Positions 31,419 through 35,446 of a stretch of DNA of 64,000 nucleotides are shown in pieces. The notes under the pieces were generated by a model, which made no database searches, was not told the origin of the DNA, and worked only from the letters and a program-made list of their open reading frames with translations. Made by a program: the position numbers and the translations under genes. Positions within the stretch are counted from its first letter, which is position 1, and each line of letters opens with the position of its first letter. Source of the stretch: Amoeboaphelidium protococcarum X5 (Eukaryota; Fungi; Aphelidiomycota); NCBI GenBank assembly GCA_023515725.1, contig JALDTO010000136.1, positions 124,001 through 188,000 of the forward strand, read 5' to 3'.

Positions 31419-32202
31419 TCACAGTTCAAAGGCGTGCTTAGGTAGTTTGTCTCCTGGAATAAAGATTCTCTCCACTCCGCTCTTGTCAATGACAGCCATT
31501 CGGATACAACCACCGGAAGAGCCATCACGGGACATGGCGTGAGAGAGCGCCCGGCTGACAAAGCTCAAACACTCATCTCTGCTCATTCCAACCTTGTACT
31601 CTGCATCACAGAAACCATAAATATACGTGGATCCAGAACCGCCGATAGCGAATGGCTACTTGTGAACACTTCCGCCCAATGGAACGCTGTACACTTCGCC
31701 GCCGTGATACTTGTCCCATCCAGCGACAATAATACCGGCTTACAAGTTATCCTTGTTATTGTAACACAGCTCTCTGAACAGCGATGCAACAGTTCTGACA
31801 GTAGGAGCTTCGCCATGTTAAACTCTACACATGAACGTAACAGTGCGACGTTAACTTCAATATAATGAGAACTGAATCGATACAAATCTTACGCAAATAG
31901 TTCAGAGTAGTAAGAGACAATGTCAGCGACAGCCTAAGTGTCTGCAGCACTTCCACTACGACAACAGAAGACATGATCATGAATGGGAGTCAACTTATCA
32001 GTCACACGGTTAGCAATGTAAGAGCCTGTAGTTGTTCTGGAATCTGCACCAAAAACCACACCGTCAGCGAATTGGACAGCCATAATAGTAGTCTACAAAA
32101 GTTTTACATCAAGTTCATAGATACAAATATTGTATGGAAACTTACACCTAAGTCAACTTCGCCAGGCTTCAGAGTCTTGAACGGATCCATTGATACAACC
32201 AT
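31419..32202 (-). CDS. PRE3: Proteasome beta1 subunit (PRE3/PSMB6)
   Basis: [44 protein letters not shown]...[11 protein letters not shown]; introns 32093-32145 and 31825-31892. Confidence 0.95.
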
Positions 32203-32591
32203 GTTGAATATTCTTTGCTTAAGTTTAAAGGTGTATGATTTGTGAAAGAAATGTTAACGACGCGGAACGATGAAAAGGCTCATTAGCAATTCAGGAGAGA
32301 CCGATAATATAAACCAGAGACTAGATTTCCTGTTATATACCGCATAGCGTTCATGATTTTATTAAAATATTAACGCTTCACACTTTTGCCAGGCTATCAC
32401 TGTCCCCAATTCGTGCATCTGTCAATTCTACACAACTTTGAGTCTCTGCGAATTGATCGTTGCTAAATTGAAACAAGAAACACGCCGATCTTAATGTAGC
32501 ACTGTACTTCACGCGTCAATTGACCAAAGAAACAGGTGATAAGCTAAATAGTGTTATGATAAAACCAATATTATTAAATTAAATGCTTTGA

Positions 32592-32951
32592 TCACTTCTT
32601 AATAGCAGATTTTATTTCCTCCAATTAACTAGCTAGCCCTTGTATCATTTATTGGGTAATTTTACGTTCGAATTGAGCTTTTTCATCTAACAAACTCAGC
32701 TTTTCGTCTTGTAAATCAAGCTTGGATTAAATTTTACTTCTTTAAAATTAGGCCTGCTCTTTCATCAGCTTCATTTCCTTTGCAACAGCCGTCACTCGGT
32801 CACTAAGTTAATCAATAGATTAACGGTTGTTCATAGGCATTGATATGTATGAAAGACCTCCTAAAGTGGTTACCAATAGAGCAAAACGCTCTAAAAACTA
32901 TTTGTTAGCACTCATAAATTTGTTCATCGTAGATTTGGCGAGATTTAACAT
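32592..32951 (-). CDS. Orphan single-TM coiled-coil protein, copy 1 (119 aa)
   Basis: MLNLAKSTMNKFMSANKQFLERFALLVTTLGGLSYISMPM...QSKLDLQDEKLSLLDEKAQF...LEEIKSAIKK*. Open only with TAR=Gln; indels between copies are in frame. Confidence 0.65.
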
Positions 32952-33131
32952 AACTGATGTGCATTACAGTATTAAAACGCGTTGATTAATGTGATGGAAG
33001 CTTACGATTGGCAGAGCTGAAACAAAGATTCGATTACGCCAATCAACGATGGCATTTGATTGATTGGCGGCACTGATTAATCATTCTGAAACAAGAAACA
33101 AATAGAGACTGATATAAATTACTTAGAAGTC

Positions 33132-33292
33132 TCAATGAATAAAAACCACACCGTCAGCGAATTGGACAGCCATAATAGTAGTCTACAAAAGTTTTACATC
33201 AAGTTCATAGATACAAATATTGTATGGAAACTTACACCTAAGTCAACTTCGCCAGGCTTCAGAGTCTTGAACGGATCCATTGATACAACCAT
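33132..33292 (-). pseudogene. Truncated PRE3 5' fragment (exon 1, intron, 14 codons, then junction IH-stop)
   Basis: Identical to the PRE3 5' end; the repeat junction gives ...GVVF-IH-TGA, a 35-aa peptide. Confidence 0.85.
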
Positions 33293-33680
33293 GTTGAATA
33301 TTCTTTGCTTAAGTTTAAAGGTGTATGATTTGTGAAAGAAAGTTAACGACGCGGAACGATGAAAAGGCTCATTAGCAATTCAGGAGAGACCGATAATATA
33401 AACCAGAGACTAGATTTCCTGTTATATACGGCATAGCGTTCATGATTTTATTAAAATATTAACGCTTCACACTTTTGCCAGGCTATCACTGTCCCCAATT
33501 CGTGCATCTGTCAATTCTACACAACTTTGAGTCTCTGCGAATTGATCGTTGCTAAATTGAAACAAGAAACACGCCGATCTTAATGTAGCACTGTACTTCA
33601 CGCGTCAATTGACCAAAGAAACAGGTGATAAGCTAAATAGTGTTATGATAAAACCAATATTATTAAATTAAATGCTTCGA

Positions 33681-34061
33681 TCACTTCTTAATAGCAGATT
33701 TTATTTCCTCCAATTAACTAGCTAGCCCTTGTATCATTTATTGGGTAATTTTACGTTCGAATTGAGCTTTTTCATCTAACAAACTCAACTTTTCATCTAA
33801 CAAACTCAGCTTTTCGTCTTGTAAATCAAGCTTGGATTAAATTTTACTTCTTTAAAATTAGGCCTGCTCTTTCATCAGCTTCATTTCATTTGCAACAGCC
33901 GTCACTCGGTCACTAAGTTAATCAATAGATTAACGGTTGTTCATAGGCATTGATATGTATGAAAGACCTCCTAAAGTGGTTACCAATAGAGCAAAACGCT
34001 CTAAAAACTATTTGTTAGCACTCATAAATTTGTTCATCGTAGATTTGGCGAGATTTAACAT
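33681..34061 (-). CDS. Orphan TM-coiled-coil protein, copy 2 (126 aa, +1 heptad)
   Basis: A 21-bp duplication gives DEKLSLL-DEKLSLL-DEK. Confidence 0.65.
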
Positions 34062-34241
34062 AACTGATGTGCATTACAGTATTAAAACGCGTTGATTAAT
34101 GTGATGGAAGCTTACGATTGGCAGAGCTGAAACAAAGATTCGACTACGCCAATCAACGATGGCATTTGATTGATTGGCGGCACTGATTAATCATTCTGAA
34201 ACAAGAAACAAATAGAGACTGATATAAATTACTTAGAAGTC

Positions 34242-34402
34242 TCAATGAATAAAAACCACACCGTCAGCGAATTGGACAGCCATAATAGTAGTCTACAAAA
34301 GTTTTACATCAAGTTCATAGATACAAATATTGTATGGAAACTTACACCTAAGTCAACTTCGCCAGGCTTCAGAGTCTTGAACGGATCCATTGATACAACC
34401 AT
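34242..34402 (-). pseudogene. Truncated PRE3 5' fragment, second copy
   Basis: Same structure as 33132-33292. Confidence 0.85.
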
Positions 34403-34791
34403 GTTGAATATTCTTTGCTTAAGTTTAAAGGTGTATGATTTGTGAAAGAAATGTTAACGACGCGGAACGATGAAAAGGCTCATTAGCAATTCAGGAGAGA
34501 CCGATAATATAAACCAGAGACTAGATTTCCTGTTATATACCGCATAGCGTTCATGATTTTATTAAAATATTAACGCTTCACACTTTTGCCAGGCTATCAC
34601 TGTCCCCAATTCGTGCATCTGTCAATTCTACACAACTTTGAGTCTCTGCGAATTGATCGTTGCTAAATTGAAACAAGAAACACGCCGATCTTAATGTAGC
34701 ACTGTACTTCACGCGTCAATTGACCAAAGAAACAGGTGATAAGCTAAATAGTGTTATGATAAAACCAATATTATTAAATTAAATGCTTTGA

Positions 34792-35118
34792 TCACTTCTT
34801 AATAGCAGATTTTATTTCCTCCAATTAACTAGCTAGCCCTTGTATCATTTATTGGGTAATTTTACGTTCGAATTGAGCTTTTTCATCTAACAAACTCAGC
34901 TTTTCGTCTTGTAAATCAAGCTTGGATTTCATCAGCTTCATTTCATTTGCAACAGCCGTCACTCGGTCACTAAGTTAATCAATAGATTAACGGTTGTTCA
35001 TAGGCATTGATATGTATGAAAGACCTCCTAAAGTTGTTACCAATAGAGCAAAACGCTCTAAAAACTATTTGTTAGCACTCATAAATTTGTTCATCGTAGA
35101 TTTGGCGAGATTTAACAT
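34792..35118 (-). CDS. Orphan TM-coiled-coil protein, copy 3 (108 aa, -11 aa)
   Basis: Lacks EQAQFQRSKIQ (33 bp); the only copy that retains its native upstream region. Confidence 0.65.
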
Positions 35119-35446
35119 AACTGATGTGCATTACAGTATTAAAACGCGTTGATTAATGTGATGGAAGCTTACGATTGGCAGAGCTGAAACAAAGATTCGA
35201 TTACGCCAATCAACGATGGCATTTGATTGATTGGCGGCACTGATTAAGATCATTCTGAAACAAGAAACAAATAGAGACTGATATAAATTACTTAGAAGTC
35301 TCAATGAATAAACAAATATATACATCACCGGAAATAGTAAAAATGTGGCTTTCAATGCAAAGACATATGTAAATTAATGGCTCGAAAACTTGATAAAAAT
35401 GCTAACATCTGATTTAATGAATTGCATTTAGAACCACCTTTTAAGT

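Follow-up and report, generated by a model that had tools for sequence, protein, structure and literature searches.

The tandem array considered here lies in a 64,000-nucleotide (nt) stretch of contig JALDTO010000136.1 of Amoeboaphelidium protococcarum X5 (assembly GCA_023515725.1; positions 124,001 to 188,000 of the forward strand), which we call the window and to which all coordinates below refer. The genome comprises 23.6 Mb in 346 contigs, and the G+C content of the window is 40%. Between the 3' end of RAD52 and the proteasome beta1 gene (PRE3/PSMB6), a repeat search and a three-way alignment delimited three head-to-tail units of 1,090, 1,110, and 1,059 nt at 32051-35309, each of them combining the 5' end of beta1 with a complete small open reading frame (ORF). 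An earlier note on this DNA had described this segment as a tandem triplication capturing the beta1 promoter for an orphan gene; all of its descriptive claims hold on re-examination, and the triplication was recovered at the coordinates claimed. The genes of the array region are all encoded on the minus strand, where their order is RAD52, small ORF copy C, a beta1 stub, small ORF copy B, a second beta1 stub, small ORF copy A, the full beta1 gene, and Rab18. The locus has the following features:

31419-32202, minus strand: full proteasome beta1 gene (PRE3/PSMB6), with ATG at 32202, exon 1 at 32202-32146, an intron at 32145-32093, a second intron, and TGA at 31421-31419
32051-33140, minus strand: repeat unit A (1,090 nt), with small ORF copy A and the beta1 upstream region and 5' end, running on into the full beta1 gene
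33141-34250, minus strand: repeat unit B (1,110 nt), with a 21-nt in-frame tandem duplication (33769-33819), three private single-nucleotide polymorphisms (SNPs), and a 1-nt deletion in the beta1 5' region
34251-35309, minus strand: repeat unit C (1,059 nt), in which the ORF has an in-frame deletion of 33 nt and the DNA upstream of it 2 additional nt
33141-33143, unstranded: junction 1, AAA microhomology between beta1 exon 2 codon 14 and the DNA upstream of the small ORF
34251-34253, unstranded: junction 2, AAA, of the same sequence as junction 1
33132-33292, minus strand: beta1 5' stub 1, with ATG at 33292, exon 1, a 53-nt intron (33235-33183), 14 codons, and I-H-TGA; spliced ORF of 35 amino acids (aa)
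34242-34402, minus strand: beta1 5' stub 2, with ATG at 34402 and an intron at 34345-34293; reads as stub 1
32592-32951, minus strand: small ORF copy A, 119 aa, with eight in-frame TAA/TAG codons read as Gln
33681-34061, minus strand: small ORF copy B, 126 aa, seven residues longer through the 21-nt duplication
34792-35118, minus strand: small ORF copy C, 108 aa, 11 residues shorter
35447-35449, minus strand: RAD52 stop codon (TGA), downstream of a short final intron at about 35567-35516 and at a distance of 137 nt from the array

If TGA is taken as the only stop codon, long conserved ORFs open in the window, among them MSH4, Rab18, and an ORF of 1,040 codons. These three and beta1 contain in-frame TAA or TAG codons, several of which in beta1 fall at positions where relatives carry Gln. 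Over the 24 ORFs of at least 300 codons, TAA and TAG together make up about half of the Gln codons, being as frequent as CAA and CAG together. In-frame TAG or TAA codons are also carried by 14 of 14 proteasome subunit families in the genome, each of which occurs twice, on different contigs. The nuclear code of this organism is of the table 6 type, with UAA and UAG encoding Gln and TGA as the sole terminator, and the genome is duplicated and hybrid-like. Reading of UAA and UAG as Gln has been reported for Amoeboaphelidium protococcarum (PMC5304391). Neither the standard nor the bacterial code gives meaningful ORF calls for this genome; the small ORF is open only if TAA and TAG are read as Gln, and with this reading it is intact in all three copies.

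Each unit contains the whole 389-nt beta1 upstream region, exon 1 (19 codons), the 53-nt GTAAGT..TAG intron, 14 codons of exon 2, and one complete, co-oriented small ORF. The AAA microhomology previously reported for both junctions was found, is present on both parental flanks, and lies in junctions of identical sequence, which implies that the third copy came from recombination between units, with no new breakpoint. Downstream of the junction the beta1 reading frame ends, as described, in ...GVVF-IH-TGA, and the spacer to the next small ORF ATG, estimated earlier at about 180 nt, is exactly 180 nt. The high-coordinate end of unit C adjoins the native RAD52 3' flank. Variation between the units consists of five SNPs and four indels, of which two are in frame (+21 and -33 nt) and the others measure 2 nt and 1 nt; with indels counted, column identity averages 97%, and pairwise divergence is 0.2 to 0.4%.

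The assignment of the flanking gene to beta1 is supported by its last stop-free piece, which matched PSMB6 with an E value of 4e-26 and yeast PRE3 with 1e-18; matches to beta5 stood at 1e-9 or weaker, a single exon piece having been searched. Exon 1 ends in ...DLG and exon 2 begins with TTIMAV, that is, with the propeptide Gly followed by the catalytic Thr1. The stubs retain the propeptide and Thr1 without the rest of the fold and thus are not functional subunits.

For one sample, contigs assembled from the short reads of three DNA runs were placed on 30600-36550, their depth serving as a rough proxy for copy number. Contigs coming from the upstream side of the small ORF stop at 33143 or 34253, i.e., at the AAA, and a separate contig of single-copy depth (35283-35636) runs on into the RAD52 flank. 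A branch of this kind is predicted when one and the same sequence precedes both the junction and the native flank. The ratios of trunk to flank depth were 2.4, 2.0, and 3.1 in the three runs, and those of a beta1-upstream contig inside the array were 3.0, 2.3, and 3.5. Checked by depth in this way, as the earlier note had proposed, the array stands at 2.0 to 3.5 times single copy, which excludes a single unit and fits about three, and its copy number in the organism is about 2 to 3.5 by this measure. The bin holding the unit C deletion was covered by a contig at about single-copy depth, and the bin of the unit B duplication was also covered. An unplaced contig of 1,108 bp (C18) corresponds to one circularly permuted unit whose ends overlap by 18 nt; it combines the unit variants in a fourth way, pointing to an additional unit or another allele of the array. 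Unit-specific variants, the branch at the junction, and raised depth bear out the view that the SNPs and indels between units speak against an assembly echo. The array is a real tandem amplification.

The homeologous contig C164 is collinear with the window, to which it is 92.6% identical toward beta1 and 90% identical toward RAD52, and the comparison of copy number with the homeolog, another check suggested for this locus, found one unit only. In the same DNA, the array units and the homeolog have diverged by 12 to 14%; given the 0.2 to 0.4% between units, the amplification is far younger than the split of the subgenomes. The small gene is broken in C164 by a GGA-to-TGA change in the segment encoding its hydrophobic stretch and by +2 and +1 frameshifts with TGA codons between them, and its 5' half is barely alignable. 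This diverged 5' part of the homeolog holds a different, Cys-rich open frame of 88 codons, for which the window has no counterpart. One run of a second sample, which bears the X5 label, contained only C164-type homeolog letters where it was placed (30600-32175 and 35732-36421) and gave no array coverage at 90% likeness, a gap that carries no proof. This run fits a hybrid origin with one parent resembling that strain.

The predicted product of the small ORF has a moderately hydrophobic N-terminal segment, tentatively a membrane anchor, ahead of a heptad-rich coiled coil. All units also have an open antisense frame, a single stop codon making open frames cheap, and the coding status of the small ORF was judged from codon usage and divergence. 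Its codon-usage log-odds amount to +0.08 bit per codon, compared with +0.10 to +0.14 for Rab18 and beta1, and are negative for all other frames on both strands. Over the 81 codons that align with the homeolog free of gaps, 18 synonymous and 11 nonsynonymous changes were counted. The resulting ratio of nonsynonymous to synonymous divergence (dN/dS) of 0.12 is the lowest of the six frames (0.28 to 1.9 in the other five), and the binomial P, taken against the neutral share of sites, is 1e-6. TAA-to-CAA exchanges account for several of the synonymous changes in the alignment, as expected if both codons specify Gln, and both large indels between the units (+21 and -33 nt) keep the reading frame. 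The dN/dS value argues that the small ORF is, or recently was, a real gene. This gene was formerly constrained and is intact now only in the subgenome that triplicated it. Its start may differ between copies: an upstream ATG at 35253 is in frame with the small ORF in unit C only, owing to the 2-nt indel, and would add 45 aa, while the equivalent ATG in units A and B (33084 and 34194) opens an upstream ORF (uORF) of 13 codons. A 108-nt GTAAGC..TAG intron in the 5' region of the small ORF was considered and rejected, since copies A and B would then have no in-frame start.

Homology searches with the small protein covered its stop-free pieces. Three such pieces gave no Pfam match at E values up to 10, and the longest one (41 aa, from unit C) gave no HMMER match at E values of 0.001 or below against 1.84 billion representatives. 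A feature search of the ESM Atlas with this 41-aa piece returned unnamed clusters with a best score of 0.87, below the useful level. A six-frame search of the whole genome for the small ORF found it in the array, in the unplaced contig C18, and in the homeolog, with no other paralog. These results are consistent with an orphan gene, judged from the stop-free pieces, but do not prove this status. A likeness of the N-terminal segment to ATP synthase subunit e was considered and received no support from Pfam.

The upstream DNA of the three copies bears on how they may be expressed. Copies A and B (copies 1 and 2 of the earlier note) were said to have been cut off from their native distal upstream DNA. 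The loss is real, but it amounts to no more than 137 nt, all of it 3' flank directly after the RAD52 stop codon, and both copies retain the proximal 180 nt of native upstream DNA. Each unit contains two ACGCGT boxes:

32977-32982, 34087-34092, and 35144-35149, unstranded: ACGCGT box 26 nt upstream of the small ORF ATG in each unit
32511, 33600, and 34711, unstranded: second ACGCGT box, one each in units A, B, and C

In the window, ACGCGT occurs at 35 sites (1464-62692) against 5.25 expected, an approximately sevenfold excess. Long ORFs leave 21% of the window uncovered, and this part holds 16 of the 35 sites; many sites are no more than about 120 nt away from the 5' boundary of a long ORF. From this distribution, ACGCGT is a plausible, although not proven, promoter-proximal element.

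With moderate confidence, we favor the explanation that a segment of one subgenome in this hybrid, duplicated genome was recently triplicated in tandem, by a microhomology-mediated duplication followed by unequal recombination, and that the resulting array increases the dosage of the small gene, expressed from its own upstream DNA. In the first step, beta1 exon 2 would have been joined across the 3-nt microhomology to a point 180 nt upstream of the small gene. Unequal recombination between the two resulting units would then have generated the third one with the same junction. The outcome is three intact copies of a small, fast-evolving coiled-coil gene (108 to 126 aa), so far found in this lineage only, with two truncated beta1 promoter-plus-5' stubs left as by-products. 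The main effect would be a raised dosage of the small gene, each copy most likely being under the control of its own retained proximal upstream DNA. An increase in dosage had been proposed earlier, and it is plausible because all three small ORF copies are intact. The stub promoters probably fire as well, reading into copies A and B, but the uORF-rich leaders of such transcripts would be expected to allow only poor translation of the main ORF.

Several points weigh against this explanation. The link between ACGCGT and promoters comes from a crude analysis of ORF boundaries. The broken homeolog indicates that the small gene is dispensable in at least one subgenome, so that its amplification may be neutral. 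The hydrophobic segment of the product reaches a Kyte-Doolittle score of only 1.16 in a 19-residue window, which makes membrane anchoring uncertain. Copy number was estimated from the depth of assembled contigs, which is only a rough measure (range 2.0 to 3.5), and the three informative runs are from one sample, probably the one from which the assembly itself was derived.

A different consequence of the same rearrangement would be promoter capture, in which case the duplicated beta1 promoter would be the main source of expression of copies A and B, the transcripts would be chimeric with the spliced 35-codon stub serving as a uORF, and the small gene would thereby be tied to the expression of proteasome genes. 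The arrangement required for this is present, as the earlier note had stated: two complete beta1 upstream regions with spliceable stubs stand 180 nt in front of copies A and B. Since each unit has a complete 389-nt beta1 upstream region, followed by exon 1 and the intron, the stubs are probably transcribed, and with no minus-strand AATAAA and no evident terminator between the stub stop codon and the small ORF, transcripts from an active stub promoter should read into copies A and B. However, the native proximal 180 nt, with ACGCGT at -26, has been kept in every copy. Furthermore, transcription from the beta1 promoter would produce a leader with four AUGs, that of the stub and three others (33084, 33055, and 32964, with equivalents in unit B), of which those at 33055 and 32964 open out-of-frame ORFs of 43 and 50 codons overlapping the main ATG. 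Such overlapping uORFs argue against efficient translation from a captured promoter. Nor did the proteasome genes reveal a common regulatory signal: across their 14 pairs, a search for a shared promoter word yielded none, and no 8-mer was present in more than seven families. The PACE-like TGGCAAA of the unit occurs in one of 26 proteasome upstream regions and ACGCGT in four of the 26. In the absence of a shared word, co-regulation cannot be argued from the sequence. Promoter capture as the main mode of expression is unlikely in our view; as far as the DNA itself can tell, it is neither shown nor needed to explain the array.

It is also conceivable that the array is a neutral structural variant, a recent product of slippage and unequal exchange in a hybrid genome, whose small ORF is being lost just as it was in the homeolog. 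The TGA nonsense codon and the +2 and +1 frameshifts of the C164 copy would agree with such a fate, as would the low divergence of the units, and the fourth recombinant unit represented by the unplaced contig suggests ongoing exchange or allelic copy-number variation. However, all three frames have stayed open despite four indels in the array, both indels within the ORF being multiples of three, and the dN/dS value testifies to past constraint. We consider a purely neutral origin quite improbable.

It is tempting to speculate beyond this. The extra beta1 promoters might drive spliced stub-plus-small-ORF transcripts, wiring a lineage-specific coiled-coil protein into the proteasome program, or proteasome assembly might be influenced by the 35-aa propeptide-plus-Thr1 stubs if these were themselves produced, and loss of the gene from the homeolog might be offset by the rewired and amplified locus; we regard this set of ideas as a long shot. 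That the assembly merely strung together alleles or haplotypes of a single or double unit, the true array having fewer than three, is very improbable, as the trunk-to-flank ratio of only 2.0 in one run and the leftover circularly permuted contig are outweighed by the graph branch predicted by a tandem repeat, by ratios of 2.4 to 3.5 in the two other runs, by contigs over the bins with unit-specific indels, and by three different indel states in three units.

The array is a new instance of an ordinary, known kind of gene amplification. Tandem segmental duplications comprising one whole gene and part of its neighbor are well documented in Drosophila and yeast population genomics. The present array shares with them the head-to-tail arrangement, microhomology of a few bases at the breakpoint, the combination of one complete gene with a truncated 5' fragment of a neighbor, probable expansion by unequal exchange, and a sister locus without the array. 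It differs from typical cases in that it was found in a fungal relative in which UAR codes for Gln, that the truncated fragment lies upstream of the complete gene in the same orientation, making read-through possible, and that the amplified gene showed no detectable relatives in searches with its stop-free pieces.

Sdic of Drosophila melanogaster consists of tandem repeats of a chimeric gene whose promoter was newly assembled, and as in the array described here, the 5' part of one gene was placed before another gene after duplication. Yet, Sdic is a coding fusion with demonstrated new expression, whereas the present case is known from sequence, its stub stops 180 nt before the next ATG, and the downstream gene keeps its own proximal upstream DNA. 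The short tandem unit of 1 to 2 kb with a small gene and neighboring sequence recalls the CUP1 array of Saccharomyces cerevisiae, which varies in copy number and acts through dosage, with a known function and selective agent; copy numbers at CUP1 are much higher than in this array. If a long leader were made, short ORFs would precede the main ORF as in the uORF control of GCN4/ATF4; however, two of the uORFs at this locus overlap the main ATG out of frame and would block rather than tune translation, and a transcript shared by stub and main ORF is putative.

The locus thus provides a clean, datable example of remodeling in a compact hybrid genome: one subgenome lost a small, fast-evolving gene, and the other tripled it and gained two spare housekeeping promoters in front of it. 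Since the units have private SNPs and indels, promoter use could be distinguished copy by copy, which makes the array a convenient natural test of promoter capture versus dosage.

On the far side of the array, RAD52 appears to end, after its short last intron, with the TGA at 35449-35447, a reading supported by a 3-nt indel that preserves the frame and by a stop codon shared with the homeolog; an apparent open frame continues down to 35352 but lacks in-frame conservation in the homeolog. Rfam and tRNA scans of the array gave no match. An exact-protein look-up with the plus-strand ORF spanning the junction, directed at other assemblies with this junction, found the protein not on record. Elsewhere in the window, a second and older tandem repeat is present at 3522-3821 and 5359-5658, its two copies, 1,837 nt apart, being 78% identical and lying over ORFs of 325 codons each.

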